Part shown: piece after piece, positions 1 through 25,890 of the stretch | Numbering within the stretch: the stretch's first letter is position 1 | How the letters are laid out: each line of letters begins with the position of its first letter | From: Macrostomum lignano | Taxonomy: Eukaryota | Direction of reading: 5' to 3' | Length of the DNA stretch: 64,000 bases | Assembly: GCA_002269645.1 (NCBI GenBank) | Contig: NIVC01000473.1 | Coordinates: 1-64,000 of the forward strand | The notes under the pieces: generated by a model | Told to the model about the DNA's origin: nothing | The model's input: the letters and a program-made list of their open reading frames with translations, nothing else | Databases searched by the model: none | Translations under genes and position numbers: made by a program

Positions 1-121
1 AGTCGGAATGGATTGTGGCTTCCTACGCGATTGAGAGGCTGATGGTGGCTCTGGGAGTTTTCGCCACAGCTGCAATCATCGAGTGTTTGTTTTGAAACCC
101 ATGATTCAAAATCAAGACTAA
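1..121 (+). CDS. 3' end (M4 helix) of nAChR-like Cys-loop receptor subunit (cluster gene 1), truncated by window edge
   Basis: Frame from base 3 reads SEWIVASYAIERLMVALGVFATAAII, matching the M4 of the paralogues (DWVVAAHAVERLMVAMGVAATAAII). An apparent 1-bp deletion near 81 shifts the tail; the restored frame gives GVFVLKPMIQNQD* with the stop at 119-121. Confidence 0.8.
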
Positions 122-1130
122 GCTGTTTACGAGCGTAAGAGGAATCTACGAGCTATCAACGCGCAGTGAATTTAAGACTGTTTGTTTAAATAATCTTGCT
201 CGAAATTTAACCCACTGATAACTCAGAGTGAGCCTTATTTTTGAAAATTATTGTTTTAATTTTTTCACACATTTGAGGAGGTGAAAATCAGTCGATAATT
301 GGAGTTTACTGGTCTTCAACTTGTACCTCGCTGTGATCTTTGTTCGTATTCACGCCCAAGAAATGTTTATAATCTCAGCTGCACACAATTATGCTCTATC
401 TAAATAAACTCTATTGGACATTATCCTTTCGCTTAAATATAAATTTTTTCTCAACGCTATCTTCATAAAATTTTCTGTCCTAGCTAAATCTTTGAAATAA
501 TACATTCGATATTTTACGAATATATCAGATTTATGTGACGCTTCTAATTGTGACCTTGTGACGCTGCCATCTAAGAACTCTGACAGCGCATTTTGTTTTT
601 GTTTTAACTTCTTAGGGGGACAGTGGGGGTACACATAATTCGTCAATTATTTTACCTTAGTTGTCCAGGACAAAGACATTCGAGTCCTTGCTCGCTAGAT
701 TACAAAATATTGTAAATGGGAAGTATTATACTAGCTCCACTCCTATTGCTTTATGTAAAGGATATACGAGGGTAATGGTGTGTGTTGTGTTAATGTGTGT
801 TAAATCTTGAAGAAATATCTAATTTAGATGAAGAAAAAAAACTGAGTCTGTATTTTACCCTACAGAACCAAAAAACCCTGGGAACAGCACCACTTCAGTC
901 CAATTACAAGCTTATAACTATAGACATAGAACTAAAGCTCCATATAAAACATAGATATAACGATTTACATTACTTCCATTCCGGGATTTCCGGGATTCAA
1001 TACGCTCGTATTATCCTGGAAAATCGTTATGTCTATGCTCTCTTTAGAGGATTAAACATGCATTTTGAGGGAGCTGCAATATTGTAAAAAGCCTGACGGC
1101 CAAATGATAAATCAAATTTAGTATAGAAGT

Positions 1131-3062
1131 TTCCAAGCCAATTGAGCCTAGGAGCAAGCAGTTTAATCCTTATTGGGAGAATCAAGCTATTGAACACTTG
1201 CTTTTCATTGTCTATGGCCCAAAAAATGGGGACTATGGAGCAACCAATTTGAGAATTAATCCTTTTCACAGTGCTCGTATATCCTTCACGAATAACTTTA
1301 CTGAAATAACGTCTGCAAATAGATGGCATATCAAGAAACGATTGACATTAACACTTTGATTTCAGAGAAACCAATCAAACAGGCAAAGGAAAAACCATGG
1401 CATACAGTATAAGCCGAGAACAATCGTGTCTCTCAAAACAGTGTTGGACAGATTGAAACCAAACCCGATCAATGTTCAGAGAATTTCTTCCTCGTTTAAG
1501 CAGTGCGGATGAAGCGAAGCATCTGCCGAAACCAGCCACCGCATTTGGCCTCTGTGATCTCAGCCGTTGTCTCCTCCGCAATCCGATGAAGAACGAGTAC
1601 GCACCACTCGAGCAGTGTTGTCTCTGGCGGTGGATTGTCCAATTCGATTTGCACCTGTGGCTGTGCAAGCTGCCGCTTGATGGCCGCCTTCAAACAGGAA
1701 TGCGCACACTCGGTCGGGTTCAGAATGGAGAATATGGAGGCAGTACTACAACCTGCCAGTTCAGCTCAAACTGCTGGGGGATCCTCAGCCGGCTATGGAA
1801 GCGAGCGCCATCAATGGTTACTAAGAAGTTCTCGGTTGTCTACATCATCTCGATTGTTGACAGCATGGAGCAGCTCTTTCGACAAATGCTTGAAACACGT
1901 TTGAAGTCAGTGTGTGACCGACAATCTTGTGGTGTACCAAGCCGAAATTTGGTGCCAGCTGCTGCTGCAGGAAATTGACCTGAACCCCACGTTGCGTGTG
2001 CAAAACACGTCGGACTCGCTGGCCACGTCTGCTGCGTCCTTGGGACCGGCGAGTTCAAATGTTGAAACCGGTCTCATCAACATAGATGAGGTGATGTTCA
2101 AGTGGAACACCAGTGAACCAGTGAGAAAATTCTCGTCGGCGTGCCCGATATTCAGGACTATTCCTGACCACTGGCACATCGGCGTCTCGACCAAGGCACT
2201 TCAATGTAATCAGCTGTTTGTCCAAGGTCTGGCTTACAGCTGTAGTACTCACTTCGAAGCCTGGATAGGTGTCAGTCAACTTGCGTCGCAACTCTTTCAA
2301 CGTCATTAGAGGATGGATATCCAGTGATGAAAGAAGTAGTTGGATGTGTTTCTCTTCCAGTTTCGATGCTCGATCTCCACCCCGTCGTGCGCGGTCCCGG
2401 CGTCCCGTGATTTCATAGCGACGCCTGATAGAATAAACTGTTTTTCTCTTTACGTCCAGCTATCGCGAAATGTGCTCAGCACTATCACCTCTATCGATGG
2501 CAGCGATAATCAGGTCGTACTTTTCGTTGCTTATCTTGCGATAGGGTTCTCGCCCTGCAGGATTCTGCTCATCTACTCCATCTTGGGCTGTAGCAAAACT
2601 TTCGTCACTGCTCTGCTCGCTAAATTCTTCGTCTGCCATGTCTATGTTTGTCTAATGAAATCTGTTATTTTCTATGGTCTAAGGCTTGCGCAACTGTGGA
2701 AAGGATTAATAGCGCGCCCAAATTCTCAAATTGGTTGTTCCATGGACCCCCTTTCGGGCCATAGACAATGGATAAATAATCAGCGGTCCCAGTGCGTGAC
2801 AACGATTGTCTGGCGAGCGCCGGTAGGCGCGAGCCATAGACAAATCGTTGCCACGTGCTGCGACCGCTGATTCTTTGCATTGTTTTTCTATTTGACGATC
2901 CTAAAGAAAATGCATTGCTTGTAGTAATGGATTGTTCTGCATTAAAAATGTGAATAATGATCGTCAAATTGCTAGACAATGAAAAGCAATTGTCTTCAAT
3001 AGCTTGATCTTCCCACTAAGGATTAAATTTCTTGCTCCTAGCTCAATTGGCTTGAAAAAAAG
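1131..3062 (-). mobile_element. IS630/Tc1/mariner-superfamily DNA transposon, decayed, with long asymmetric terminal inverted repeats
   Basis: 1131-1272 is the reverse complement of 2692-2770 plus 2973-3062 (e.g. caagccaattgagc..ggagcaag..tttaatcctta..gggag..atcaagctattgaa). The repeats enclose a DDE transposase pseudogene. Exact termini and TA TSD not resolved. Confidence 0.8.
1496..2639 (-). pseudogene. IS630/Tc1-like DDE transposase pseudogene
   Basis: ATG at 2639 (MADEEFSEQ...). HTH-like N-terminus (LDVKRKTVYSIRRRY), then YVDETGFN (first D), TIDGARFH (second D) and LPPYSPF[L]NPTE (E). In-frame stops at 2460-2462 and 2055-2057, plus at least two frameshifts. Confidence 0.85.
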
Positions 3063-3308
3063 CAAGTCTATTTTTTTCAAGCCAATATTTATCAAATATC
3101 TCGCTAGAAATGTGATAACACTGGCGCTGCTTTATGCTTTCATATTGATGAAAGCTATCTGTCCAATCGAATTTCAGTAGCAAACGGATTTTCAGGCGAT
3201 CTTTGAGCCCAACCTGTAGTTGGTCGGGGTGAAACGGCATTAAAACTATTTTATCAGACGTACCAGTTGTCAATGCGATCAGCAATGCACTGGAAAATGA
3301 GACATAAA

Positions 3309-4581
3309 ATGCTATTCTCATTCATACTGCTGGTTTCGCTTTTAGCCTCGACACTAGCTACTGATTTCGATGTCCTGCTAATGCAGCACCTAAACAACAA
3401 AATTGCAAACTACAGCCAATGATTCTGCCAATATTAAACAAGACAAAGAAAGTCAACGTGTCGTTTCACATCATGGTCAGCCCATTTGTCTCAGTGGACA
3501 CTGCCAAGCAGAACATCAAAATCGCTGCCTACGTTTAAGCCAGCTGGGAGGAGGAGCGACTCGTGTGGAATCCTGCCGACTTTGGTGGCGTCGGTTCTAC
3601 TAGCTGGGACCCAGCGAAAATTTGGTACCCAATCATCATGACATACAACGGTAACGGCGATGAACAGATTCTGATTCCTCGGATTCCTACTTACACTGGC
3701 TTCTAAAAATTCAAGCGTGACGACGGTTGCTTCATCCTGGCGCCGGGAGTTCGAATTTTTTTGCCAATTCAACATGTCCGACTTTCCGTACGACCAGCAC
3801 ACTTGCGAGCTGCTGTTCTTCCTTGCAACTCAGGCCAATCCTGATGCAATGCGGCCTGTTCGCAGCGCAATGCCCATGCGGGTGACAGGAATTTACAAGC
3901 CTAGCAACGAGTGGATATTGAAAATTGCAACAGCAGATTTGGAAACCAAAAAATATTTTATAATCGAAGGACATAACGAGACCGAACCTTCGAACTTTGT
4001 TCTGCGATTGCACTTGTAGCGAGTGTCAACGTACTATTTCATCAACATCATCACGCCTTTGCTGCTGTTGACTTTGCTCCAGGTGTTGGTGTACTTTGTA
4101 CCCCTGGAGTCCGGTGAGAAGCTGGGATTCGGCATCACAATCATGCTCAGCTACACTGTGTTCTTGCTGCTCCTGGACGGAATCCTGCCGAAGTCGCAGA
4201 AGATGCCCGCCATTGCCCTGTTCATCACGGCCGCCATGGTGCTGTCCACCGTGTCGCTGCTGCTGACATCGCTGACCATGCTGTTCCACTACAGGCCGGA
4301 GGGCAGCCGCATGCCGGAATGCGCTCGGGCGGCCTTTGTTCGATGCCTGGGCCGCCTGCTCTGCGTCAGCGGCGCCACAGGTGGGCCAGCAGAGTCCGGC
4401 TGAAGCTGAGGGCGATGGCAACTGCGTGCGGAAACCGCCTACGGCGGAAGAGAAATCGGTCGATTCAGACTGGGTGGTGGCCACCCGCGCTATCGAGAGA
4501 TTCTTGTCGCTGTTAGGAGTGGTTGCTACCGCCATCATAATTGTAGTCTTTCTGATGGGGCCGTATCTTCAGTTCTCTTAA
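3309..4581 (+). pseudogene. nAChR-like Cys-loop receptor subunit pseudogene (cluster gene 2)
   Basis: ATG at 3309 with a signal-peptide-like start (MLFSFILLVSLLASTLA). Cys-loop CQFNMSDFPYDQHTC, M1-M3 with ESGEKLGFGITIML, and M4. In-frame stops at 3536-3538 (taa) and 4017-4019 (tag), frameshifts near 3418, 3695 and 4390. No introns. Confidence 0.9.
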
Positions 4582-4870
4582 TGAAACTTGAATAACTGAG
4601 ATTTGAATGCTTATGAAAGGCATTGGCATTCTATTGACTACCATATTCATTGATACTCTTTGCAATGGTTTTGTTTTATTTTCTGAATAATCTTCTGAAT
4701 TGAATTTTCGGAATTTTTTAGCTCTGAATTTAGGAAACAGGCATTGATCCCCGGGCCTTCTTGGGCAGTGACTAGATAGATCTGTAGTGAAACATGCGTG
4801 ATCAATTTTTTCATGCATAGGCTAATGCCAATCGCGGAAGGGCTTGAATAAACGAAAGTAACTAGTCACC

Positions 4871-4885
4871 GTTGCCATTGGATAC
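4871..4885. promoter_or_regulatory. X-box-like (RFX) motif GTTGCCATTGGATAC downstream of gene 2
   Basis: GTTGCC half-site, 3-nt spacer, GGATAC half-site, about 290 bp after the gene 2 stop. Confidence 0.35.
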
Positions 4886-5228
4886 GCACTAGTCAAGCGC
4901 GAAATGCAGGCAATGGAAATAGGCTAGGCGTTTTGCTAATGCAATTAACGTTTGGGCAAATATTTGAATAGCTAGCAATGCGGCCCGTTCGTCCAGTTGC
5001 CATTGCTGGGCGCTAAATCTGCTTCAGTTGCAGAGTAAACAGTCTGTATTTCAGCGAGAGCAGAAACCGTGTATAATTAATTAAGTTCTTCCTAGCTAGT
5101 TAATTGATGGTAGCTAGGAGAGGAAAGATTAAGTGCTCTCCCTATAACAAGATTATTATTAATAATAATTACAAAGGGTTGTGGCTTCATCCACTATACT
5201 GCTCTTCTGCAATTCTGAGGCAATTCTG

Positions 5229-5575
5229 GCCATTCCGCCGAGTCCTGAGCACACACAAGCGCGCTAATACTGTAAGCAGGCACGCATTCGTGCACACGCT
5301 CACACAGGGCCTTTTTGACTTTCTAATCGTCAGGGGATGTACACCCTCTGCGCCTTGGGGTTTGGCCCGCATGTGGGCGAGAATCGCAGGACAACCCCCT
5401 GGGCCAACTTTCGTGCACAGGCCCGATATGCATGTGGCCGCGTACTGAACCGATCCCGGGGGTCGCGGGGCGAGTCAGACGGCTCTGCCTACATCGAATA
5501 CCGAAGTCCTCAGAACTTCCGAACTTGGCAACAGAAATCGGCCACAATTCAAAATCAAATCAGAATTCAAGCTTC
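5229..5575. repeat. Dispersed repeat (SINE-like or non-autonomous element), longest copy in window
   Basis: 5229-5352 aligns by eye to 52866-52980 (same orientation) and 33003-33085 (inverted). Ends in an aaatc-rich tail (caaaatcaaatcagaattc). Confidence 0.55.
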
Positions 5576-6139
5576 CATTTAAACACGTACTGTTAAAAAT
5601 TATCCCTTAAAAAGCTTTTTTGAGGCAGAGAGGCAGGAATTACAGATGCAAATTACATATGTAACATGTAAATATTAGACAGGTGAGTTATAATTACATC
5701 AAATTTTTCCTGATCAAACATGAATAGGTACAAAAAATCGAAAAAATACAAATCGAGCTACAAGTTGCGAAGTTTGAATGCAGGTACCAGGTAGGGAGGC
5801 TTGGGTCCATGTGATTTTGCAGCAGTGCATTTAGCTCCGTGGCAGATTTTGTCTGAATCGCATTGAGTCCTAGAGAGTCTTACTAAAGAGCTAGGGATTC
5901 TCCCAATAGAAAATTTCCGGTAGTAACCACATATTAAACTCATGCTTTTCTGGTATGAGAGGTCTTCATTTCTATGTACTCTAACGTGGGGGTACAGTTA
6001 CATCGGTCAGTCATCAATACATGTGTATACCATGTCGCTATGTCCCCTATAGCCTCTTTTCTAAGAATCGGTGGCAGTTCTTGCGCTCGTACATGCAGAT
6101 CTTACCACCTCATCAACACTGACGTTTCCTTATTGCCTA

Positions 6140-6557
6140 TGTTAATTCCACGTTCGGAGCACGAAGCAGCCTGACGCAAACACCAACGTGGGGGAGCGAG
6201 GCACGCAAGCCCCATAAAACCCTATAGACTTGGGACATAATATTTCGACGAAAAGAGTAAAATAAGCTATCAGCAACGATTAAGGAAAAAGCGATCGCCA
6301 TTATGAATAAGGATAAAAGACACCACAGAGGATAAAACTTGACTCTGCGCAAACAGACAAGACGAGCCGACACAACGCTAGAAGACCTTAAAACCATATC
6401 GGGGGAGGTGGGTGCGCGCATGGCAGAGGGACGAAGAGGGAGCGGGGCGACGGAAATAAAGAATACATGACGCAAAAAGTGTTCAGAGCAAGGGAGAGAG
6501 AACCATCGAGACCGGTGCCCGACCAGCTATTGACCACCGTAAACGTCACCCCCTAAA
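6140..6557 (-). mobile_element. Possible isolated 3' LTR with polypurine tract
   Basis: On the minus strand, a purine run (tttaggggg) directly precedes TG... and a ~409-bp segment ends in ...ttaaCA. No second copy or coding region seen. Confidence 0.3.
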
Positions 6558-7435
6558 GGGGCACGCTTACGGGTAATTAAGAGCAAACGTTTGATTACTT
6601 TCTACGTGTCTGTCAGTTGAATTACATGAAGTAGAATATATTTTTAAAATATAAACTAAAAAATACAGATGGAGCCAGACAGACTTAACGTCAGATACCC
6701 CAGAAAGATAATACAAGATTGAACAGAGTTGATGTAGCTAATAGCCACATGTTTGTACTGTAGATATGACGATATCCTGGAAATTTCGTCTAAAACCTAA
6801 GAATTGAGGCTGTGAACTGAGCATTAGGATTAAAATGTTAATTACATATCCTACTGACATGTCCCATTCCGAAAAGTTATAAAAATAGCACCGCTCAACT
6901 CATCCTGTTAAAATTTTTGTTACATAGTCAGAAGCTGAGAATGGTAAAAAAGATATTCATAAAACTAATAAGTCGAGCTAGGCCATTTTTATAATTCTTA
7001 GCACAGGAAATGTACGAAGAACATCAATTTAACATACATGTAGAATCCTAATTTTCTAAGCATATTAGGATCTTGTAACATGTATACGAAAGGCAAGATA
7101 TCAAAAGATGAACCAGGGACTACTTAAACTAGTTTAAGAAGTCCCTGAAGATGAACATTAGGTCTGCCTCCAGTCAAATGCAATAACAATGTTTGCGCTA
7201 TGCTATGCTATGCCACTCAGCTGCGGAACATACTACTATCAGTACAGCGTGTTTTTGGTACTCAAATTTATTCGTCATCGTATCGATTGGATCTTGACTA
7301 TAAAATATTTGAACCAACATTGGTGAGTACTAAGCAAAGCAAGCACAAAAATACTTTTTCGTTGATACATTATAGGAAAGATTCTCGTTTAACCAATAGA
7401 CCTCAGTCAAAACACTTTCTAGGACTGCAACAAGG

Positions 7436-8688
7436 ATGTTTTCTCAAGTAATCCTAATCGGTTCTCTCTTCACGTATTCAGCAGCAACCGATTTCGATGT
7501 CCTGCTGATGCAACATCTTAAGCAAACCATAAAAAACTACAGTCCTTTCATACTGCCGCGAATTAATAAGACCAAAACTATTAAAGTAGCTACGGACATC
7601 ATGGTCAGCCATCTGGTCTCAGTGGACACCGCCAAGCAGAACTTGAGGATATCTGCCTACTTTCAAGCCAGCTGGGAGGAGGAGCGACTCGTGTGGAATC
7701 CTGCCGACTTTGGTGCACCCAGCTCACTCGCTGGGACCCAGCGCATATCTGGTATCCGACAATCATGATATACAATGGCAACGGCGAGGACCAAGTTCTC
7801 GTGCCTCAGATCCCTGTTGCATTGTTATCGTTAAGGCCAACGCTGACCATAGTCACAGCATACTGGCGCCGGGAGTTCGAGTTTTATTGCGAGTTTAGCA
7901 TGGTTGACTTTCCATACGATCATCATGTTTGCGAGCTGTTATTTATTTACCATAATCAAGGCTATCTCGATTCAATCATTCCTGTTCCGAGCACGGCCCC
8001 TCTGCGTGTGCAGGGAATCTACAATCCGAGCAACGAATGGATTCTGACCAATGCCACCACACACTTTGAAAAGAAACTTTACCACGTATTGGATGCACAC
8101 GAGACTGCATTCCCAGCGTTCGTACTGAGATTGCAATTAAAGCGAGTGTCAACGTACTATTTCATCAACATCATCACGCCTTTGCTGCTGTTGACTTTGC
8201 TTCAGGTGTTGGTGTACTTTGTACCCCTGGAGTCCGGTGAGAAGCTGGGATTCGGCATCACAATCATGCTCAGCTACACCGTGTTCTTGCTGCTTCTGGA
8301 CGGAATCCTGCCGAAGTCGCACAAGATGCCCGCCATCGCCCTGTTCATCACGGCCGCCATGGTGCTGTCCACCGTGTCGCTGCTGCTGACATCGCTGGTC
8401 ATGCTGTTCCACTTCAGGCCGGAGGGCAGCCGCATGCCGGGATGCGCTCGGGCGGTCTTTGTTCGATGCCTGGGCCGACTGCTCCGCGTCAGTACTGCAA
8501 CGTCGCCACGGGTCGGCCAGAAACCGTTGGAGGGTTTCGGCATAGCCGATAGAAGTGCCTTGGAGGTTGCCGGAGAAGCCAGGGAATTCGATTCAGACTG
8601 GGTGGTAGCGGCACGCGCAATCGAAAGGCTCATCTTGCTGTTCGGAGTGGTTGCTACTGCTGCCATCATCGGCTTGTTTTTACTATAG
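7436..8688 (+). CDS. nAChR-like Cys-loop receptor subunit (cluster gene 3), intronless, one 1-bp frameshift
   Basis: ORFs 7436-7768 and 7693-8688 join by a single 1-nt shift near 7712-7726. Signal peptide, Cys-loop CEFSMVDFPYDHHVC and M1-M4 present. Could be a sequencing error or a young pseudogene. Confidence 0.85.
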
Positions 8689-10619
8689 AATAATGGACAT
8701 AAAATAAAGCATTAGATCAAGGAACTGCCGTACGGTAAAAAGGTACAAAATCTTTTCACAATTCGTGCTATCGCAATTTCGTCTCCTTTCGTGGTATCGC
8801 GAATGAGCTTTAAAAGCTCTTCCTTATTAAGTCAAAGTTTGAAGGGATCAGACTTGGACAGTGCCGCAAATTAGGCAGCCAGCGATCGAGGAGGCAAAGC
8901 AGTCATATGCCTATTCCACTGACCCATCTGCACTGACACTAATGAACACGTACGCAGGCACACTCTCACACATTGTGTAAAATGGCCTCTGGCTTTGTCA
9001 CCGTGAGACACACTCGCTGAAGCACACTTCGATTACACACTCTGTGCCCTCATGTACTTTGAGTAAAAAGTCTCGTAAAATAGAAATGTTATTTTATAGT
9101 TTATAGTTTGGGACAACTATAAAACGTCTTAAAGACTAGTTGAGCACTGTCCTTTCTATAATCTATTATTTAAATGCACTAATATATAGTTGTTCTTGTC
9201 CTGAATAAAAAATTAAATACTCAGCTGATTGAAGCATATAAGATACGCCCAGACCAGTAGAAAATATTTCTATTGAATTAAAGGTTCCCCTCAATCATGA
9301 TATTCTTTTGGCCCTGCACATGTATTGGGACCAGTCGGTATTTACATACCGTCTATCTAAAAAGTGCTGAAAAGATTTACGATATATTTGAAGCGATTAA
9401 TTATTTTCACAATTCAAGTTTTCATTGCAAATATAGCATTGAGCCTATCTACACAGTGGCAGATTTCTCTAGGTTATAAATGCTGTATATATCGATATGC
9501 ATATTGGCAGGTACATGTAAATATGCTTTAGGCAAACAATGGAGACTGCTTTCGATAGAGTGTTGGATCCCTATAATCGATTCAATGGCTCCGGCTGCAA
9601 TCGATTTGTTTGTTAAAGCTCAGTTGCGTAGCGGTTGAAGTGCTCTCGCTTCTGGACTCTCCAGCTCGGTAGGCAATTAGCTAGCTCAACAGAGTCGATA
9701 TCTGGAATTTATGGACGGTATTACAAACCCTCAGTTGACAAAGGCAGCTGCACTCGTTACAGAAGAAAGAAGTCCACTACAGCCGTAAGAGCTTAAACTA
9801 TGTAGACTGTGTAGGACTTTTCAGTGAGGTGCTTACAAATCCCTTGAGACAGCAAAGCATTTCTGTACTCTTGTGAAAACTCTGCACTAGCTCTCATATT
9901 CGCATACAGATATAGTCCTAAATATTTCAAGTTATGTATTAATTTAAAAAAGTATAAACCGCAGAATTTTTTACTTGCTATAATTATTTTAAATGAAGTT
10001 TCCTATCGTTATTTCTATTTAGTAAGTCACAAGGTTGGCAAAGTTAATTTTGGTAGAACTTTCAGAGTGGTCGGTTCGTAAATTTAACGGTGGATTTTAT
10101 GAATGAAAGGCTGGGCCAAAATATTCAAAGGAAGTTGGTCATTCCTTGCGCCAAACGCGTCTTGCACGTTATTCACAATCTACGGATAAGATGGATCAGC
10201 ATCGCTGTCACAACGGAACTCGATTTTGGACACACCCCTAATTGTCTGCGAGAAGTAGAGCAAAGCATATGGTCTGTGACGTCGGATGTTTCAATGGTGT
10301 CAGTGTATGGAATGCTGTACATCTTGCGTTGTCTGTGTCTTTGAGAGATCAGTAGGCAACATAAAAACTATGCTAAAACACTATAGGACCTGCTGCACGC
10401 AGCCTTAAGGATCTGCGATATGCGAGTTATCAACGCGGCCTTCTATTGCAGCTCCGGCCTGGTTCTTCAAAGCGACTTGTTGCGTCTGTTGCAACTGCAG
10501 CTGGCAGGCAAATTCACACTCCCCGAGTTGTGTAGCTTGGAGTAGTTGGAGAGAACATGCGGTGAGTGGGTGCAGCATTTGCAGCGGGATGACCCACAGG
10601 GATGGAACCCTTTGGGAAG

Positions 10620-10800
10620 CAGACCCAGAGAGAATGAGAGAGAGAGAGAGAGAGAGAGAGCTAGAGAGAGATCATTGCGATTTGTTTAAAATGAAAATTC
10701 TCGCCAACTAGCTTATTCGATTAAGGTAGTCGGAATTTGTTTATCACATAATTTTATACTCGCAAAGAATACACAGAGAGAGAGAGAGAGACAGAGATCA
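10620..10800. repeat. (GA)n microsatellites inside a short imperfect direct duplication
   Basis: Two (ga)n runs, each followed by gatcatt(g/a)cgatt(t/c)gtttaaaat. Confidence 0.6.
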
Positions 10801-11568
10801 TTACGATTCGTTTAAAATTGAACTTCTTGCTAATTTCGTCGAAATGGTTGTCGCCGAGATGGTCTGTTGCCAAATTGGACTGTTACTCGGGCGAGGACAG
10901 ACGCGAACTCGGCGCTCTGTAGACTGCCTGCTGGCCGACACCCGCGCCGCAGATTTAGCTTTGAGGCACGGCCTGCGTGCCGGGCTGCTCTTGATTTATA
11001 AGACCCAACGGACAGGTTAGTTTGATTTTGTCACCTGCTGTATAGACTAAAATTCAACTTCAAAACGACATGGCTTTGAAAGGGAGCGAAGAATGCTTGT
11101 AGGATTTATCCAATTTATTAATTAAACAGATAGTAGCTATACACATAATATTCACGTAAATTTCATTAGCATCCTTTTGCAACATGCTAGCATACATGGA
11201 ATACATATCCGAGAATGCTATATAAAGGTGCGCCGCGCGTATCCGTGCTAAAGATAGTTCGCTACTGCAGGCCGCACCCAGACCAGAAAATGCAGCGATG
11301 AAAAGTTTCTATGCAAATAACGACGTCAAACGAGGTCAGGGATCTGCTAATTGGAATATCAGACCAATATAAGCAGCTAACTTTACGATATTTGATCTAT
11401 TGAATTACCTAAATGAAATTCAAATAAGAATCAATCTAGAATTTACACTAGCACGCCAGGGTGATGAGTTGCGAGATCTCTGGTGCTGTATATATATGGC
11501 TGCAGTGGAAAACCGAGCAACTTACAATTAACCGATCAATTCAAAGCAAAGCCCTGTCTCGTGGCAAA

Positions 11569-12846
11569 ATGCTCGCTAGAACAGCGATCCTTTTATGTCT
11601 TCTAAAAGCTGTTACGCCAACGACTGTCGACTTTGACGCCAAGCTGCTAAAATATCTAAAAAACAATACCGATCACAGTCCGTTGCATTTTCCAAGAATC
11701 GACAAAACCAAGATGCTAAACATATCGCTGAACTTCTTGCTGAGCCACATTGTCTCCGTGGACACAGCTAAGCAAAGCATGAAGGTGTCAGCATACGTTG
11801 AAGCCAGTTGGGAGGAAGAGCGACTCGTTTGGAACCCGGAAGACTTCGGCAATACCGTGTACACCCGATGGGAAGCTGAACAGATTTGGCACCCGATCAT
11901 CATTGTCTACAATGGCAACGGCGATGATCAGACATTGGTGCCGAAAGTGTTTGTCGGATTGCAGTCGAAAACGCCTAATTTGTCCGAGGTGAAGGCCACT
12001 TGGCGACGCGAGATCGAAGTATTTTGCGCATACAACATGGCCGAGTTTCCGTTTGATCGACACACTTGCGATATAAAAATATTTGCCACTGATGCATACT
12101 ATGAACTCTTGATGCAACCAGCGGTTTCACCTAACAAGTATAACCTTCTGGGTATTTACCAGGATAGTAAAGAATGGAATCTTGATGCTGCTACAGTCAG
12201 AATATTGGCCCAAAAATATGACATTTATCAAGAGTTTGAAGCCGTTCAACTATCCACTTACAACATCGAAATAAAAATTAAAAGGATATCAACCTATTAT
12301 GTAATCAACATTATAATTCCTCTGTTGCTGCTCGCCCTGCTCCAAGTGCTGGTGTACTTTGTGCCCCTGGAGTCCGGTGAGAAGCTGGGATTCGGCATCA
12401 CAATCATGCTCAGCTACACCGTGTTCCTGCTACTCCTGGACGGAATCCTGCCGAAGTCGCACAAGATGCCCGCCATTGCCCTGTTCATCACGGCCGCCAT
12501 GATGCTGTCCACCGTGTCGCTGCTGCTGACATCGCTGGTCATGCTGTTCCACTACAGGCCGGAGGGCAGCCGCATGCCGGAATGCGCTCGGACGGTCTTT
12601 GTTCGATACCTGGGCCGCCTGCTCTGCGTCAGCGGCGCCACTAGGGCATCACAGAAGACCAATCAAATTGCTGTCGAAGGCTATACAGAGAACAAAAATG
12701 CCCGGAGGCCAAGTGAAAAAGAAGCGTCAGAATCGGACTGGGAAGTAGCAGGTCGAGCAATCGAGAGGCTCATGTCGCTAATGGGCGTTGTTGCTACTGC
12801 CGCCATTATTGGGGCATTCCTGCTGAGGCCACTGTTAGCTAACTAA
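11569..12846 (+). CDS. nAChR-like Cys-loop ligand-gated cation channel subunit (cluster gene 4), intact, single exon, 425 aa
   Basis: Uninterrupted ORF. Signal peptide MLARTAILLCLLKAV, WEEERLVWNP, WHPIIIVYN, Cys-loop CAYNMAEFPFDRHTC (C-x13-C), M1-M3 with GEK, short M3-M4 loop, M4. No loop-C CC. Confidence 0.95.
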   Translation: MLARTAILLCLLKAVTPTTVDFDAKLLKYLKNNTDHSPLHFPRIDKTKMLNISLNFLLSHIVSVDTAKQSMKVSAYVEASWEEERLVWNPEDFGNTVYTRWEAEQIWHPIIIVYNGNGDDQTLVPKVFVGLQSKTPNLSEVKATWRREIEVFCAYNMAEFPFDRHTCDIKIFATDAYYELLMQPAVSPNKYNLLGIYQDSKEWNLDAATVRILAQKYDIYQEFEAVQLSTYNIEIKIKRISTYYVINIIIPLLLLALLQVLVYFVPLESGEKLGFGITIMLSYTVFLLLLDGILPKSHKMPAIALFITAAMMLSTVSLLLTSLVMLFHYRPEGSRMPECARTVFVRYLGRLLCVSGATRASQKTNQIAVEGYTENKNARRPSEKEASESDWEVAGRAIERLMSLMGVVATAAIIGAFLLRPLLAN

Positions 12847-13085: not shown

Positions 13086-13819
13086 ATAATTTTTCCGGCT
13101 TGGGCGCTGTCAACTAAAATAAATATTTATTTACGGCGTCCCCATTATGCTTATTATAGGACGGAATACACACACGCTGCTATCTGCTTACGTATAATAT
13201 ACTCAATATATTATCTACGCTACTAATATGTAGTAGTTTAGCTATTTTTTGTACAATTTGATGTTGGAAAATGTTGGAAGATGTTGGTCTTTTTACATAC
13301 CCGTTGGAATTCCCGTTAAAAGGTTGGGAGTATATTTTCGATATCGCATTTGCATTGTAAAGCGAAATATTATATTAAAAGTGATACCAACTTAACGCTC
13401 TAGAATGGAGCCCGAAGTAAGGCTCCGGATAAAATATATACATAGACGGACAAGTCGGAGATATTCTCTAAGAGAGTTCCAGAAACGAACTTGCAGTGAT
13501 AGGATTTTTCGTTATTTATTTCAGCCAGTCGGTTTGTCAGTTTTTTCGGGAATCTACTTCGAGCTTACTTACTTCTATGTACTTACAGTGCTTAATTTGA
13601 CAGCCCCTTTCGAACATTTTGAAGAGTTTCTCTTTACTACTACCATGCAGTAGTTGATAATGTATATTTTACCAGCTTTCTCGTTTACTAACACACGGAG
13701 GATTCGTGCGCTCAGGGGGTAAGGGATATTTAGTCAAACACGGAAGCAACGTCACGAGTTATATTGCACACAAGAGTACCTCCACAAATGAAATTAATTC
13801 AATTACAGCAGTCCCACTC

Positions 13820-13833
13820 GTTGCCATGGCGAT
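13820..13833. promoter_or_regulatory. X-box (RFX/DAF-19-type) motif GTTGCCATGGCGAT upstream of gene 5
   Basis: Matches RTHNYY-WT-RRNRAC at all but the last base, about 146 bp upstream of the ATG. Conserved in the paralogous promoter of gene 6. Confidence 0.55.
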
Positions 13834-13978
13834 TGATTCAGCACTGGTAGACCAGACGCGTTATTGGCTAAACAGCTATCCTATAGGGTCTTTTCTTCAA
13901 CTCTGCTTTCTATGATGATATAGAGTAGAAAGCAGTAACCAACATTTGCCTCTTACACCGTATCGACACATCGACACA

Positions 13979-15268
13979 ATGTCCGTACGCGAAATTCTAC
14001 TAGTCGCCACAGCGATTATAGCTGCCACTTGTGGCGGCTCAGCTCAGCATAGAGACCTGGAGCAGGAGCTGCTGCAGTACTTGAAGAACAATATCACCAA
14101 CTATAGTCCGCTGCTGCGACCCACAATTAACGCCTACAAGCCTACTTACATCACTATGGACACATCCTTGACCCAGCTGGTATCGGTAGACAGTGCCAAG
14201 CAAAGCGTCAAGATTGGGGCTTTCGTAATGGCCGGCTGGACTGAGGAGCGTCTGGTCTGGGATCCGGCCAAGTTTGGGAACCTAACCGTGATTAACTGGG
14301 ACAATTCGAATGTCTGGTTTCCTGTCATCCTCATCTATAATGGCATCGGAGACAACCAGATGCTCACTCCACAGATGCCAGTGTATTTAATGTCGATCCG
14401 ACCCAACCTCACCAAAGTCGTCGCCGGGTGGCGTCGAGAGTTCGAATTCTCGTGTGAGTTCGACGTGAGCAAATTCCCCATAGACAAGCACGTCTGCGAG
14501 CTCGAGTTCTTCTTTAGCGACCAGGGCCATGACAACCAAATGCTGATTCCTTTCAAGAACAATATGAAGCCATTCCAAATAGATGGACTTTATCGAACTA
14601 ACAGCGAATGGAAGTTGGTGAATGCGTCGACGTCGTCCGAACGGAAGCCGTACAAACTCGTTCAAGGTGCACCGGATGTGCTTCTACCAACTTATGTAAT
14701 CCGTCTGGAGATCGAGAGAGTCTCTGCTTACTACTTTATGAACATCATCACACCACTGCTACTGCTGACTTTGCTACAAGTGTTGGTATACTTTGTGCCC
14801 CTGGAGTCTGGCGAGAAGCTGGGATTCGGCATCACAATCATGCTCAGCTACACTGTGTTCCTCCTTCTGCTGGACAGCATCGTGCCCAAGTCGCAGACAA
14901 CACCAGCGATCGCTTCGTTCATCACAGCCGCTATGATCTTGTCGACGATATCTCTGCTACTAACGTCGCTAATTATGCGTCTGCACTTTGCTCCGGAGGG
15001 CAATCGGATGCCGGCCTGCATGCGTGCCGTTTTGATTGGCTTCTTGGCTCGAGTGTTCTGCGTTGGCGGCGCTGCCAAAATCAACAAGGTCGAGATCAAG
15101 AATGGGACTAGCATCGAAAAAAAGAACACTACTGATGAAGAGGACACTCCGGTTGTTCGATCCGATTGGGTGGTTGCTGCGCACGCTGTCGAACGACTCA
15201 TGGTTGCTATGGGAGTGGCCGCCACCGCTGCTATTATTGGAGTTTTCGTCATCCAACCGTACACTTAA
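13979..15268 (+). CDS. nAChR-like Cys-loop receptor subunit (cluster gene 5), intact, single exon, 429 aa
   Basis: Uninterrupted ORF. Signal peptide, Cys-loop CEFDVSKFPIDKHVC, ESGEKLGFGITIMLSYTVF, M4. Confidence 0.95.
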   Translation: MSVREILLVATAIIAATCGGSAQHRDLEQELLQYLKNNITNYSPLLRPTINAYKPTYITMDTSLTQLVSVDSAKQSVKIGAFVMAGWTEERLVWDPAKFGNLTVINWDNSNVWFPVILIYNGIGDNQMLTPQMPVYLMSIRPNLTKVVAGWRREFEFSCEFDVSKFPIDKHVCELEFFFSDQGHDNQMLIPFKNNMKPFQIDGLYRTNSEWKLVNASTSSERKPYKLVQGAPDVLLPTYVIRLEIERVSAYYFMNIITPLLLLTLLQVLVYFVPLESGEKLGFGITIMLSYTVFLLLLDSIVPKSQTTPAIASFITAAMILSTISLLLTSLIMRLHFAPEGNRMPACMRAVLIGFLARVFCVGGAAKINKVEIKNGTSIEKKNTTDEEDTPVVRSDWVVAAHAVERLMVAMGVAATAAIIGVFVIQPYT

Positions 15269-15662
15269 AGACCGCAAGAGATTATACTGAGTCGGCTTAT
15301 GAAACTTTCTGAAAAAAGATTCTTTAATAATAATAAATTCTCTATGCTTCTATCTTCTAATTAAATGAATTAATTCACATCAAAAGTGCATGGGTGCTTC
15401 TAGTCTTTTCATTTAATCGAGCGAATTTCAGCATTATTCTGTTCTACGAGCTATGCTAATTGTATGCCACTCTGTGCCACTAGAGACAACTAAAATCAGA
15501 TTATGCAAACATATAAAAAACAGCTCTGGTTCTCTACTCACAGCAATTGCTGCCGCAGTAGGCTTGCACCCCAATCCTTCATAAAACGATAGGTTCATCA
15601 AGAGGATAGCTACTCAATCATGCAGTAAACTAAGAGGCACTTTTCATGATTGCAAATGGTGA

Positions 15663-18950: not shown

Positions 18951-19535
18951 AGATGTTTCAGTCTGAATGTACTAGCTGACTGCTCTTAAAGGGTGCGTCA
19001 ATGGACAGCAATCGAAACGCTGCTTCAACTTTGTTAGCCGAAGTGGACCGATTAATTAATTACCAATGTTTGATCTTAGTATAAGCTATCTGTTTTACTA
19101 AGTAACGAATAGATATTTGTCAGCAAGTAAGACGGTTTCAGTAACTATTCCATTTTCTTTAGATGAGTAAAATGTACACTACTTTTTCTAATATAGTGGT
19201 CTGATTGAGTGAACAGCCTTGGAACTATTGTGAAAGAGAAATAATTTTGATGCCTGCACTTTCGGTCTTTAAAGGACATGTGATCACAGCGGGACCGCAG
19301 ACAAGAAGATGGAAATCCTAAAGCAAACCTTTTGTGAGGTTGCGTTTGATTTGTGCAGTTGGGGTGGTGGCTGCTCTATTATTATTTGCATCTCGCTTTA
19401 CTCTGTGCATGCCGCCACCCCAGTTGGGTGACTCATTTTATAACCCTTCTATCGCTGACTATATAATCGCTCCCCATTTATTGTGCATGTCAAATATACT
19501 TCGTGATTTTGACTCTAATTTCTCGGCTCTTACAT

Positions 19536-19546
19536 TGGTGGCAGCG
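19536..19546 (+). promoter_or_regulatory. Primer-binding site TGGTGGCAGCG (tRNA-Leu-type)
   Basis: One nt after the LTR-terminal ...ttaca; complementary to a tRNA 3' end ...CGCUGCCACCA. Confidence 0.7.
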
Positions 19547-19568
19547 AGAACCCAGTGCAAGTGCACTT

Positions 19569-20350
19569 ATGGCCCAGAACACCCTGCTACCGCCAAAGTT
19601 CAGTGGAACAGACTGCTCTGACGTGAGAAAATGCCTACGCATCTTCGAGGAGTTTGCCAACGATGCGAAATGGGACGATGAGACCTCAGCATCGAAAGTG
19701 AAACTGCTGCTTACGGGAGAAGCCCAACTGGTCGTCTGGGACCTCGCCGAGACGAGGCAGAAGAGCTTCAAGAGCATCAAAGAGGACCTCACAAAGTTTT
19801 ACGGAGGTGAATCCGACAGCTTTAAGGCTATGAGTGATTTCTACTCGAGGAAGCGTGGAGACACCGAGACGCTCCGTGAGCTCTGCTTCAACCTGAAGCT
19901 GCTGTACCAGAAGGCCAGGCCGAGTGACTCAGTTGCTCAGTGGGACCGAGATGTGCGTTTCAAACTTCTGCAGCTGCTCAAGGCCGACATTCGCGACAAC
20001 CTGCTCAAGACAGAGGACGCAGAGAGCTGCTGCCTGGAGACTCTGCTGCGGCGTGCGGCTCGGCTGGAGAAGCTGGCTTGGCGACAGGACCGCCTGGACC
20101 GACTGGAGAAACGCATGAAGGAGCTCATCGCGAGGGTCAGCGTGCAGTCCGGTATCGACACTCGGCGTCGCCGTCAGCAGCGAGGAGGCGGCTGCTTCAA
20201 CTGCGGCCAGCTCGGACACCGTGCAGCGCAATGTCAGCAGCGTCAGAAACAGCCGGACCAGATCATCTGCCACAAGTGCTCGGGGCGAAGGCACAAGGCC
20301 TCCGTCTGGCCATCCAAGGCTCCGGGAAACTTCAAAGGGTTGGTGCAACG
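19569..20350 (+). CDS. Retrotransposon Gag with zinc knuckles
   Basis: MAQNTLLPPKFSG..., CFNCGQLGHRAAQC (CCHC) and a degenerate second knuckle CHKCSGRRHKASVW. Confidence 0.85.
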
Positions 20351-23300
20351 GGTGCGGGACTCACACCAACCCGAAGGAGCAATCCCGTGCTTCATGCGAT
20401 TTTTGTTCCTGGAGAGGCAAACAGCAAGCCGTGCCGCTGGCTGCTGGACACCGGAGCGCAGACCTCACTGATCAGCGACGTTGCCTTGAGAGCTGGACGG
20501 TCGCGGCGAGCTGAAGCCGGCAGGCGTCAGGCCTGTGTCCGTGGACGGCTCCGCCCTCGAGCTGCTGGGAAGTGTGAGCATTACCGTGCGACTCGGTCAT
20601 CAGCTGCGCAGACAAATGGACGTGCTGGTGGTCAGAGTTATTCGCTTAGACTTCATCATCGGGATGGATTTCGTGAGAAAGGCGGCCAGATCGCAGTTCA
20701 GCATCGACCGGGGTGCCAAGACAGTCGCATTCGATGGTGAGGCGGTTCCGTTCAGTAACTGCGATTCCAAGCAAGATGACCCGCTGTCCTGGTGCTTGGT
20801 ACCCACAGTGATCATCGCCAGAGTTCAGGGCGCCGTCGTGGTGCCGCCAAGGTCAGTTAAAGTCGTGGACGTGACGACAGAGACCAAGCAGGCACAGGGC
20901 ATCTTCGAGCCGTCACAGGAGTTCATCGACAGAATCGGAGTGCTGCCCGGCCGCGTGTTCGCGGTGTCTTCAGCGAGCGGCAAGATCCCGGTTCAGGTGT
21001 GCAACCTTAGCTGCAGCCCGGTCACGCCGTTCTCCAACCAGAGCATCGGCACTTTCGAGAGCGCGGAGGTAATCGATGAGGACGAGGACGTGCACGAGTG
21101 GCGAGGCCCCGCGGACCAGTTCAACATTAATCCGGAGCTGCCAGAGGAGGACAGAGACCGACTGGCGAGGCTGCTGAGGGCATTTTCCAATGTGGTCTCA
21201 GTCCATGAATTTTTAGTATATGGAATTTGACGTTTGGACGAGCAGCGCAGCGCAGCACAAGATTGAGCTTGACGACGGCGCACGCCCGATTCGCCAACGG
21301 CCTCGGCGGGTGCCTCACGCCTTTAGGAGGCAGGTGGACGAGAAGCTGGGGCAGATGCGATAACATGGCGTCATCGAGCCTTCCACCAGCCCGTGGGCGA
21401 GCAACCTGATAATCGTCAGGAAGAAGAATAATGACATCCGAGTCTGTGTCGACTGACGGGCGCTAAACAACCTTACGGTGAAGGACGCCCACCCGCTGCC
21501 GCATTTGCACCAGGTGCTCGACTCTTTGGCTGGCTGCTCATAGTTCTCTACGATTGATATGCGCCAAGGCTTCCTTCAGGTGGAGGTCAGAAAGGAGGAT
21601 CGGCCGTTGACAGCGTTCTACACTCCGAGCGGCCTGATGCAATTCTGCAAAATGGGATTCGGCATGTGCAACGCGCCTGCAACGTACCAGCGAATGATGG
21701 AGCTCATCATGACTGGTCTGAGCTGGGAGGAGGTCGTCGCGCACATTGATGACCTGATCATCTTCAACAGGGACTTTGAGAGCCACGTTCAGTCGCTGTC
21801 CAAGGTGTTGCATCGACTGCGGTCTGCCAAGCTGAAGCTGAACCCCGGCAAGAGCTTCTTCCCCAACCGGAGCGTCACGTACCTGGGCCACCAAGTCTCT
21901 GAGAGCGGCATCGCACCTGCCGCGGAGAAGGTTGAGGCGATCAGGCGGATGCCAGAGCCACAGTCCGAGAAGGATGTCCGGCGCATCATCGGCATGCTCA
22001 GCTTCTACCGCAGGTTCGTGCCCAACTTCTCTGACATTGCCAAGCCGCTGCATCACTTGGCGCAAAAAAGCGGGCTGCGACTTCGTGTGGATGCCAGAGC
22101 ATGCTGCGGCGCTGATCAAGTTGAAGGACGCGCTGACCAAGGCCGCGGTGCTCCAGCTGCCCGACTTCAGCCGGTCTATCGTCATCAGCTGTGACAGCAG
22201 CGCTGTGGCCTTGGGTGCGGTGCTCAGCCAGGAGCTGCCAGTGGCCTACGCATCCCGGACGCTGAGCAAGGCAGAGCGCAACTACAGTACAACGGACCGG
22301 GAGCTGCTCGCGATTGTATGGAGCCTCAAGCAGTTCCGCATGTACCTGAGCAACAGCCGCAAGATCCAAGTGTTCACCGACCACAAGCCAATCACCGGGC
22401 TGCTCAACGCGAAGGAGCCAATCGGTCGGCTCGCACGTTGGCTGCAACTCATTCAGGAGTTCCCCCTGGAGATCCTGTACCGGCAAGGCAAGGAGAACAT
22501 CGTGCCAGACGCCCTCAGCCGAGCACGCGGTTCTACACGCGGTTCGGCACGCGATGCTCCAGCCCGACTTTCAAGTTCCGGCGGCGGCGAGTGAGTCGGT
22601 CCAAAAGCTCACCGGACGGCGCACTGCTCCGCAACGGGCTGCCAGTGATCCCACAGCACATGCGAGCGGAGCTGCTGCAACAGGCGCCGACCGGCCGAGC
22701 GCGGGTTACCTCGGACAGCGGCGGGTGCTGCGAGCCTTGCGCGAGCGTTCCTCGTGGCCGGACATGCGCGAGGACGTGCAGGACTGGGTGCGGAGCTGCC
22801 TGGTCTGCCAACGCCGCAAAGGAGCGCCAAAGCGAGCGCGCGCTGAGCTGGTGCGGCAACCGCTACCGGCCAAGCCACGGGGTGTCATGCAGATCGACAT
22901 CAAGGGCCCGCTGCCAGCCACCGATTCAGGCAAGCGCTACATCCTCTGCTTTGTTGACACATTTTTTAAATTGGGTGGAGGCTGCCGCCCTCAGCCAGAT
23001 CGACGCCAAGACGGTAGCCGAGGCTCTGGTGACTTGCGTGGTGCTGCGGCACGGAGTTCTGGAGGTCGTGCACTCGGACTCGGATCGAGGCCGAAGTTTT
23101 CAAGCAGACCTGCGCGCTGCTCGGAGCAGAAAAATCGAGGACCTCACCGTTTCACCCCAGCGGCAACGGGAACGTCGAGAGGTTCAATAGAGGTCCAGCA
23201 AATTTCGTTGGACGCTGGGCAACATGCTCTCGGCATTCTGCTCGGAGAACCAAGCCGGCTGGGATGCCCTGCTGCCCTACGTCGTGTGGGCCTACAACAG

Positions 23301-23913: not shown

Positions 23914-24417
23914 CGAGCTTTCTGTCTGCTACTTGATTGGGACTTTTTCGTGTTGCATGAACCCTTTTTGTTGTTTTACTTTTGTTTTATTCCGTTTCTT
24001 ATCAAGCTCGCAGATCCTAAGCTGATTTGCGATCCCCTGGTCGAATGGTGGCTGCCTCGCAACTCCGAGGTAGACTAATCAGAGAGTTCCCCGGAAACTG
24101 CGAAGCAGCCACCGTTCACCGAACCGGAGATTGCAAAGAACTTGTAGTCTCCAGAAGAAACCCCTAAGGCCAGCCAGGAGACCGTACAGTCACTTTACAT
24201 CATCTTGACGAGTTACAAATTCTTACTAACAGTAGTTAGATAGATCATGCGTGTTTTACAAGCTTTATTTTACAAGTATTTTATTAACGCGAGGACTAGT
24301 GCACCCCGGGGGAAATGGTATAGTTAGCCAAACACGGAAGCAATATTGGCATTTGTGACGAGCGTATACTTCCTAACTTCTACAAACGAGATTCATCCAA
24401 TTACAGCAGTTCCACTC

Positions 24418-24431
24418 GTTGCCATAGCGAC
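24418..24431. promoter_or_regulatory. X-box motif GTTGCCATAGCGAC upstream of gene 6
   Basis: Full match to RTHNYY-WT-RRNRAC, about 152 bp upstream of the ATG. Confidence 0.6.
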
Positions 24432-24582: not shown

Positions 24583-25890
24583 ATGTCCGTACGCGGAATT
24601 CTACTAGCTGCCACAGCAATTTTAGTTGCAACTTGTGGCGGCTCAGCTCAAGATAGAGATCTGCAACACGAGCTGCTGCAGTACTTGAAGAACAATATCA
24701 CCAACTATAGTCCGCTGCTGCGACCCACAATTAACGCCTACAAGCCTACGTACATCACTATGGATACATCCTTGACACAGCTGGTATCGGTAGACAGTGC
24801 CAAGCAAAGCGTCAAGATTGGCGCCGTTTTAATGGCCGGCTGGACTGAGGAGCGTCTGGTCTGGGATCCGGCCAAGTTTGGGAACCTAACCGTGATTAAC
24901 TGGGACAATTTGAATGTCTGGTTTCCTGTCATCCTCATCTATAATGGCATCGGAGACAACCAGATGCTCACTCCGCAGATGCCAGTGTATTTGATGTCGA
25001 TCCGACCCAACCTCACCAAAGTCGTCGCCGGGTGGCGTCGAGAGTTCGAATTCTCGTGTGAGTTCGACGTGAGCAAATTCCCCATAGACAGGCACGTCTG
25101 CGAGCTCGAGTTCTTCTTTAGCGACCAGGGCCATAACAACCAAATGCTGATTCCTTTCAAGAACAATATGAAGCCATTCCAAATAGACGGACTTTATCGA
25201 ACTAACAGCGAATGGAAGTTGTTGAATGCGTCGACGTCGTCCGAACGGAAGCCGTACAAACTCGTTCAAGGTGCACCGGATGTGCTTCTACCAACTTATG
25301 TGATCCGCCTGGAGATCGAGAGAGTCTCCGCCTACTACTTTATGAACATCATCACACCACTGCTACTGCTGACTCTGCTACAAGTGCTGGTATACTTTGT
25401 GCCCCTGGAGTCTGGCGAGAAGCTGGGATTCGGCATCACAATCATGCTCAGCTACACTGTGTTCCTTCTTCTGCTGGACAGCATCGTGCCCAAGTCGCAG
25501 ACAACACCAGCGATCGCTTCGTTCATCACGGCCGCTATGACCTTGTCGACGATATCTCTGCTACTAACGTCGCTAATTATGCGTCTGCACTTCGCTCCGG
25601 AGGGCAATCGGATGTCGGCCTGCATGCGTGCCGTTTTGATTGGCTTCTTGGCTCGAGTGTTCTGCGTTGGCGGCGCTGCCAAAATCCATAAGGTCGACGG
25701 AGCAGAGGACGTCGAGATCAAGAATGAGACTAGCATCGACAAAAAGAATGCTACTGACGAAGAGGACACTCCGGTTGTTCGATCCGATTGGGTGGTTGCT
25801 GCGCACGCTGTCGAACGACTCATGGTTGCTATGGGAGTGGCCGCGACCGCTGCTATTATTGGAGTTTTCGTTATCCAACCGTACACTTAA
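24583..25890 (+). CDS. nAChR-like Cys-loop receptor subunit (cluster gene 6), intact, single exon, 435 aa; recent duplicate of gene 5
   Basis: Uninterrupted ORF nearly identical to gene 5. The flanks 24185-24580 and 25890-26420 are homologous to 13600-13978 and 15270-15850. Confidence 0.95.
   Translation: MSVRGILLAATAILVATCGGSAQDRDLQHELLQYLKNNITNYSPLLRPTINAYKPTYITMDTSLTQLVSVDSAKQSVKIGAVLMAGWTEERLVWDPAKFGNLTVINWDNLNVWFPVILIYNGIGDNQMLTPQMPVYLMSIRPNLTKVVAGWRREFEFSCEFDVSKFPIDRHVCELEFFFSDQGHNNQMLIPFKNNMKPFQIDGLYRTNSEWKLLNASTSSERKPYKLVQGAPDVLLPTYVIRLEIERVSAYYFMNIITPLLLLTLLQVLVYFVPLESGEKLGFGITIMLSYTVFLLLLDSIVPKSQTTPAIASFITAAMTLSTISLLLTSLIMRLHFAPEGNRMSACMRAVLIGFLARVFCVGGAAKIHKVDGAEDVEIKNETSIDKKNATDEEDTPVVRSDWVVAAHAVERLMVAMGVAATAAIIGVFVIQPYT

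Follow-up and report, generated by a model that had tools for sequence, protein, structure and literature searches.

Gene conversion confined to the M1-M3 region of three tandem Cys-loop receptor paralogues in Macrostomum lignano

The first 26 kb of a 64,000-nucleotide stretch of the Macrostomum lignano genome (GCA_002269645.1, contig NIVC01000473.1, positions 1 to 64,000; the window) is a same-strand array of intronless Cys-loop genes similar to nicotinic acetylcholine receptor (nAChR) subunits, g1 to g6, placed in tandem at a spacing of ~4.1 kb. We conclude with high confidence that three of them, g2, g3 and g4, have been subject to non-allelic, non-crossover gene conversion confined to the part that codes for transmembrane segments M1-M3. 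The shared tract combines identity above that of its flanks (synonymous sites included), a significant agreement run under permutation, the form of a patch bounded on two sides, and conflict between trees. In the account that we favour, with a probability of about 0.88, the array is old and g2, g3 and g4 exchanged ~290-350 nt by repeated non-crossover interlocus conversion. Conversion of M1-M3 had been proposed in an earlier note on this DNA, and the proposal is upheld by the regional contrast in synonymous divergence (dS), by permutation, by the bounded flanks, and by site discordance with a sister locus, L001.

Homogenised tract in g2, g3 and g4

The five full copies were aligned with MAFFT and their identity was profiled by sliding window; the evidence on the tract rests on assembled sequence from the window and L001. 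All features given here lie on the forward strand. The homogenised tract runs from the end of M1 through M2 and M3 into the intracellular loop, of which it encodes the first ~20 residues. It spans 4018..4378 in g2 (gene at 3309..4580), 8141..8492 in g3 (7436..8688) and 12350..12641 in g4 (11569..12846), where its 5' boundary lies later than in the other two. The g2 copy was delimited by alignment, dS and permutation, and the g3 copy by alignment and permutation. About a dozen differences had been noted between g2 and g3 over ~350 nt, with roughly half of the amino acids identical between the Cys-loop and M1, at coordinates that prove good to about 15 nt. We count 12 differences in 345 nt, synonymous sites included (g2 4018-4362 vs g3 8141-8485), against 40 in 97 within the 100 nt upstream. 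Amino-acid identity of the pair is 36/72 (50%) from the Cys-loop to M1 and 94% in M1-M3.

Over the 292 positions of 12350-12641, g4 has 11 differences from g2 and 13 from g3, as opposed to 42-43 in 100 just upstream and 43-49 in 77 downstream. The abrupt switch previously placed at about 12337 and 12641, with its jump in GC content, was recovered: g4 enters the shared tract at a point between 12337 and 12363, the tract ends at 12641/12642, and the GC content of g4 moves from 0.36 (12250-12349) to 0.55-0.67 within the tract and then to 0.47. The flanks of the three tracts differ by 40-60%. Boundaries are nested, the 5' one differing by pair and the 3' one being common to all, at the start of the indel-rich loop. 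Each copy carries 5-6 private differences (17 in total across g2-g4). M4, the intracellular loop and intergenic DNA are diverged, so the patch is bounded on both sides. Non-coding DNA of the g2, g3 and g4 units could not be aligned and shows no similarity between them; this marks the duplications as old, with the tract as a bounded patch within them.

Since both flanks are diverged, the tract bears the mark of conversion without crossover, as distinct from unequal crossing-over. A tandem array with a spacing of about 4.1 kb is a setting in which unequal crossing-over could have produced chimeric genes instead of patches. A crossover, however, would make one whole side of the tract uniform, and here similarity stops on both, with M4, the 3' untranslated region and intergenic DNA as diverged as the ectodomain; we give this explanation almost no credence.

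Divergence was estimated by region with the Nei-Gojobori method (NG86). Along the genes dS is far from uniform: among g2, g3 and g4 it is 1.05 to saturated in the ectodomain and 0.9-2.0 in M4, but 0.055-0.098 in the tract, about 15 times below the flanks. An internal control is offered by g5 (13979..15268), an intact paralogue without the shared tract, together with g6 (24583..25890), which also lacks it and is a young whole-gene duplicate of g5. Across the tract, g2-g4 differ from g5 and g6 at a dS of 0.88-1.0 overall and 1.2-1.7 in M3, with a nonsynonymous divergence (dN) of 0.15-0.17. Because g5 and g6 keep the amino acids at a dS of ~1, protein-level selection does not explain the identity of the tract. 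A GENECONV-like test, which takes the longest or highest-scoring agreement run over polymorphic sites and compares it with 5000 permutations, gave p = 0.0002-0.0006 for g2-g3, g2-g4 and g3-g4, and no signal for comparisons with g5 and g6.

Purifying selection on the pore, combined with a preference for certain codons or for GC at third codon positions (GC3), might be thought to suffice without any conversion. The M1-M3 amino acids are indeed strongly conserved family-wide, and a 41-nt core in M2 is identical even in deep paralogues. Yet the same region stands at a dS of ~1 between g2-g4 and g5, g6 and two genes of the sister locus (L_g0 and L_g1) despite conserved amino acids, g2 is a pseudogene beyond protein-level selection, and the M2 core uses GGA and ACA, which are not GC3 codons. 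A variant of this explanation acting on the nucleotides finds no excess RNA structure in the folding energy of the tract (z = +1.3) and no match of the tract to an Rfam family, and RNA-level explanations of the tract were rejected on these grounds. Selection without conversion is thus very improbable.

Sister locus and repeated exchange

L001 was found through PAA92206.1, an M. lignano protein that is a cluster member of P0002, a 51%-identical match. The locus (GCA_002269645.1, NIVC01000059.1) is syntenic with the window, and its genes L_g0, L_g1, L_g2 and L_g3r were added to the alignment. L_g1 corresponds to g1, L_g2 to g2 (92% identical, flanks included) and L_g3r to g3, which in L001 is reduced to an M3-M4 stump (L001 16369-16671); intergenic DNA of the two loci is 82-85% identical. 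L_g2 and L_g3r, the latter in M3, carry the same GC-rich tract as the window genes, which speaks against an artefact of assembly in the window. Collapse of paralogues or a chimeric consensus, arising in assembly or in polishing, would be a concern in Macrostomum, whose genomes are repeat-rich, neopolyploid and difficult to assemble (PMC10733133). Against it stand not only the copies at L001 but also the private differences of every copy, the pair-specific 5' boundaries and the unique flanks, and we regard an artefact as a very slim possibility.

Informative sites among four taxa (g2, L_g2, g3 and g4) support orthology of g2 and L_g2 at 56 of 59 positions in the ectodomain and at 8 of 8 in M4, but at only 2 of 12 in the M1-M3 tract (Fisher p = 3.7e-8 for ectodomain vs tract). 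The remaining tract sites group g2 with g3 against L_g2 with g4 (7 sites) or g2 with g4 against L_g2 with g3 (3 sites). These three partitions are mutually incompatible and interleaved along ~300 nt, and in M3 four of ten pairs of informative sites fail the four-gamete test. Segment trees built from the five window genes alone show no clear topological discordance, only different branch lengths; the discordance between ectodomain and transmembrane region emerged on adding L001.

The 5' segment of M1 (g2 4026-4088, g3 8149-8211) bears on timing. In it g2 differs from g3 at 1 of 63 positions but from its own orthologue L_g2 at 7 of 63, all of them synonymous. The dS of g2 and L_g2 is 0.65 in this segment and 0.089 in the ectodomain (Poisson p = 5e-4 against the ectodomain rate), so at least one overwrite took place after the loci separated. 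The recurrence claimed by the earlier note is accordingly borne out by this late overwrite, the nested boundaries and the incompatible site patterns. As read from the two loci, exchange is shown to have been repeated: it preceded the window/L001 split and, in the M1 5' segment, also followed it, the events being few in number.

A second, shorter tract lies in the ectodomain, where shared sequence had been reported at 3539-3588 and 7668-7716. It is a perfect 51-nt match between g2 3537..3587 and g3 7665-7715, significant by permutation within the ectodomain (p = 0.0005). It also occurs in L_g2, with 2 differences in 51, and is therefore older than the split of the two loci.

The state of g2 adds to the argument. 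Compared with the intact L_g2 it carries 63 substitutions in 1284 nt and has two nonsense codons, TAA at 3536-3538 (CTA in L_g2) and TAG at 4017-4019 (AAG in L_g2). Its reading frame is further broken by three net frameshifts: one nucleotide is missing near 3420, one is inserted near 3681, and 8 nt are lost near 4376. The 360-nt tract of this otherwise broken gene holds no lesion. A clean, paralogue-like tract in a dead gene, which is beyond protein selection, is further evidence of copying from its neighbours. An alternative genetic code was considered for the stops and ruled out, as g4-g6 contain no in-frame TAA or TAG and g2 is also frameshifted. In g3 there is one 1-nt deletion near 7724, which may be real or an assembly error; the frame is otherwise open. 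The g2 pseudogene, the g3 frameshift and the two further copies without the tract, g5 and g6, had been missed in the earlier note.

Both nonsense codons of g2 stand directly 5' of the two tracts in which it is identical to g3, and the T that creates each stop is also the final mismatch ahead of that tract. Such a placement may be due to chance, or to filtering of tracts that would bring a stop into g3. An older 255-residue model of the g2 counterpart, P0003 (UniParc UPI0007A18BAA), loses the frame at about residue 205 and stops within M1, while the open reading frame (ORF) at L001 12825-14105 (GCA_002269645.1) is intact, unlike that model. The mismatch is either an error of the older model or the mark of a different allele or subgenome copy.

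GC content, M2 core and the place of the island

In g2-g4, GC3 is 0.85-0.86 in the tract and 0.53-0.58 in the ectodomains (Fisher p = 3e-6 to 9e-9). In g5 and g6 the same region has a GC3 of 0.69-0.71, and it does not differ from their own ectodomains (p = 0.4-0.6). The difference holds at codons for the same amino acid as in g5, where GC3 is 0.88-0.89 vs 0.70-0.73 (sign tests, p = 0.008-0.03). A stretch converted only between g2 and g3 (alignment columns 745-831) has a GC3 of 0.76 and 0.66 in these genes vs 0.48 in g4. The private differences of the tract copies could not be polarised with g5 as an outgroup, which is saturated at synonymous sites and was rejected for that use. The GC-biased conversion claimed previously fits the data but is not shown by them: GC3 is raised in the tract alone and even at codons for unchanged amino acids, as such a bias would predict, but the few private differences have no excess of weak-to-strong changes (A or T to G or C, W>S). 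GC-biased conversion is a plausible, though not demonstrated, source of the high GC3.

Conversion requires local homology. Members of the family without synonymous homogenisation (g5, g6, P0001 and P0002) share 72-82% of their M1-M3 amino acids. P0002 is near-identical to L_g1, and L_g0 is equally unconverted by nucleotide distance. Ectodomain identity is 40-59%, and the intracellular loop is rich in indels; the common 3' boundary of the tract at this loop fits a conversion process limited by homology. In the repeated-conversion account, selection on the protein would keep M1-M3 similar enough for heteroduplex formation, so that the tract persists, and the fast-diverging ectodomain and the indel-rich loop would block branch migration. 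The outcome would be a self-sustaining island of concerted evolution in which each new conversion sets the clock back to zero. GC-biased mismatch repair would, in the simplest view, account for the high GC3 of the tract as a by-product. Conversion here would be passive and not adaptive, the dead copy g2 being overwritten along with the live ones.

Several points weigh against this account or parts of it. The paralogue dS of the main tract (0.055-0.098) is about equal to the orthologue dS (0.070), which dates the bulk of homogenisation to around the split, with patchy exchanges later; that bulk could be one burst near the split and not a steady turnover. It may be that the window and L001 represent homeologous subgenomes within a single neopolyploid species (PMC10733133) instead of two species, which would blur what is meant by orthologue and by post-split. 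The 17 private differences comprise 7 W>S and 8 S>W changes, small numbers with polarity set by majority rule, and g2-g4 share one tract ancestor, so the rise in GC3 is effectively a single observation. That a homology threshold is the reason for the position of the island on M1-M3 is something we infer.

The first of these points raises the alternative of one or two one-off conversions from a donor that was already GC-rich, with no ongoing process and no GC bias. The phylogeny of the main tract is star-like, its divergence is close to that of orthologues, and the private changes lack a W>S bias, all as such events would have it. They do not account for the overwriting of the M1 5' segment after the split, nor for the three interleaved, incompatible site partitions and the nested boundaries. 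A late event between paralogues that are ~25% diverged would, judging from 10.1101/135152, also want the usual homology. We consider one-off transfer unlikely and prefer repeated conversion.

The earlier note had also seen in the tract a constant pore kept by conversion, one that would let subunits with different sensors assemble together. A constant transmembrane part joined to a variable ectodomain is real at the protein level, and similar arguments have been made for clustered protocadherins (PMC4978886). The pattern is, however, a family-wide product of purifying selection. Only three of at least seven members share the tract; of these g2 is dead, g3 is frameshifted and in L001 a stump, and the unconverted members keep the pore by selection. 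What conversion contributes is limited to three neighbours, in which identity in M1-M3 rises to 94% (g2/g3) over the baseline of 72-82%. Nor is there a sign of tighter constraint: dN/dS in the tract since homogenisation is 0.3-0.65, as compared with about 0.16 in the long term. Conversion favoured for the sake of a common pore module is therefore improbable, and the co-assembly claim is not sustained.

The M2 core mentioned above (GAGAAGCTGGGATTCGGCATCACAATCATGCTCAGCTACAC, 41 nt, found by sequence comparison) lies at 12379..12419 in g4 and at 4116-4156, 8239-8279, 14813-14853 and 25417-25457 in the other full copies. Seven of eight genes (g2-g6, L_g0 and L_g2) have it in identical form, and the eight as a whole share a 29-nt stretch without variation. 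The genes belong to four deep paralogue lineages at two loci and are otherwise saturated at synonymous sites. Between g2-g4 and g5 there are runs of 12-15 identical degenerate codons (p = 0.0004-0.009). The invariance reflects either very short conversion patches that reach all members or constraint at the nucleotide level. We think it unlikely, while keeping it as a candidate, that the core is a nucleotide-level element such as a homology anchor that initiates recombination, an RNA hairpin or an editing substrate; a weakly supported hairpin predicted around it has z values from -0.7 to -2.5 and no compensatory pairs. If it were such an element, the core could both start the conversion island and fix its place, and selection would truly act on the pore module as a cassette shared across the array.

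Known systems and the rest of the window

The case is a clean yet ordinary one of gene conversion between tandem paralogues, with a textbook mechanism and no special design. In humans, non-allelic conversion has a mean tract of ~250 bp and a GC bias (Harpak et al., 10.1101/135152); the length of the tract and its raised GC3 agree with both. As in other duplicated genes (10.1101/135152; Dumont 2015, PMC4467073), the tract is a few hundred bp long, the converted sequence is richer in GC and the flanks have escaped after diverging. Unlike in those cases, synonymous sites in the flanks have reached saturation here, so that the island outlives the rest of the duplication, and the GC bias is not polarised. 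In the clustered protocadherins, region-restricted conversion was inferred from a contrast in dS, according to the citation of Noonan et al. 2004 in PMC4978886. Those too are tandem receptor paralogues with a low dS in one coding part and a high dS in the part that determines specificity. In contrast, the flatworm genes code for a pentameric ligand-gated channel, conversion has homogenised their transmembrane pore instead of ectodomain repeats, and three genes only are involved, one or two of them pseudogenes. To go by the titles of the respective papers, domain-restricted conversion has also been reported for TLR1/6, CEACAMs and opsins.

Molluscs and other lophotrochozoans have intronless tandem expansions of nAChR-like genes (Jiao et al. 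2019, PMC6896357), and the chemotactile receptors of cephalopods are built on such expansions (review PMC11526382). The array in the window resembles them in being intronless, nAChR-derived and tandem, with divergent ligand-binding domains and a conserved channel, and in lacking the loop-C Cys pair and the loop-B Trp. It differs in that its best named matches are only 27% identical and that the flatworm genes are known from sequence only. The term gene conversion has no occurrence in the text of PMC6896357, and a literature search for gene conversion in Cys-loop receptor arrays found no report. The case illustrates that, in tandem receptor families, concerted evolution can continue in a conserved channel module when the ligand-binding domain, M4 and all non-coding DNA escaped it long before. 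For work on lophotrochozoan and flatworm Cys-loop receptors, this makes trees and dN/dS estimates based on the transmembrane region misleading; pseudogenes can appear conserved in the pore, and GC3 peaks can flag conversion tracts.

The proteins of the array have a Cys-x13-Cys loop with an FP(F/Y)D motif, segments M1-M4, a GEK motif before M2 and a short M3-M4 loop; example motifs are CEFSMVDFPYDHHVC (g3) and SGEKLGFGITIMLSYTVFLLLL, which can be aligned to nAChR alpha3. The genes each code for the domains Neur_chan_LBD (PF02931, E = 4e-27 in the intact g4) and Neur_chan_memb (PF02932, E = 2.5e-23 in g4), both of which were likewise matched in g5. Among solved structures, the nearest to these proteins are vertebrate nAChR alpha3, alpha4 and alpha7 (E about 1e-39 to 1e-35). 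In phmmer alignments with human alpha3 (6pv7_A), g4 has QEFE in place of NCCE, so lacking the loop-C Cys pair, and D/A at the position of the loop-B Trp of GSW. Because both features are missing, the array genes are, as far as sequence can tell, nAChR-like orphan subunits of the cationic nAChR-like branch and not acetylcholine receptors. Exact-sequence look-ups of g4 and P0003 gave no match, and a metagenome scan with the family alignment found no related loci.

The remaining array members are g1 and the g5/g6 pair. The window edge cuts g1 (1..101), of which only the M4 tail at the 3' end is left; by tblastn it is the orthologue of PAA92206.1 (L_g1), and window 1-457 matches L001 11184-11626 at 82%. 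The g5/g6 pair is the picture of a plain recent duplicate, with 94% amino-acid identity, an even dS of 0.04-0.09 and homology that runs into the flanks (alignable at 87%, window 13600-15404 vs 24186-26032). It is of about the same age as the homogenisation of the tract and the window/L001 split.

Outside the shared genes the two loci differ in content. The match of L001 to the window breaks off at about 10.0 kb and resumes at about 57.6 kb, so that L001 17536-20727 stands opposite window ~10000-57500. The part without a counterpart in L001 comprises g4, g5, g6, a retroelement, aminotransferase and HPF1 fragments, satellites and cullin-5. Between g1 and g2 the window holds ~1.7 kb of extra GC-rich sequence (window 612-3092 vs L001 11832-12596), probably an inserted mobile element; a Pfam search on one ORF of it returned no domain. 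The retroelement, between g5 and g6 (window 19503-23306), is Ty3/gypsy-like, with a gag zinc knuckle, RVT_1 and RT_RNaseH, and is probably degenerate, its ORFs being split over several frames. Dense minisatellites fill window 27278-48779 and 50470-52822, among them a 30-nt unit repeated ~259 times (40796-48495). A 42-nt unit at 37950-40162 reappears reversed at 52345-52822, within the cullin-5 gene region.

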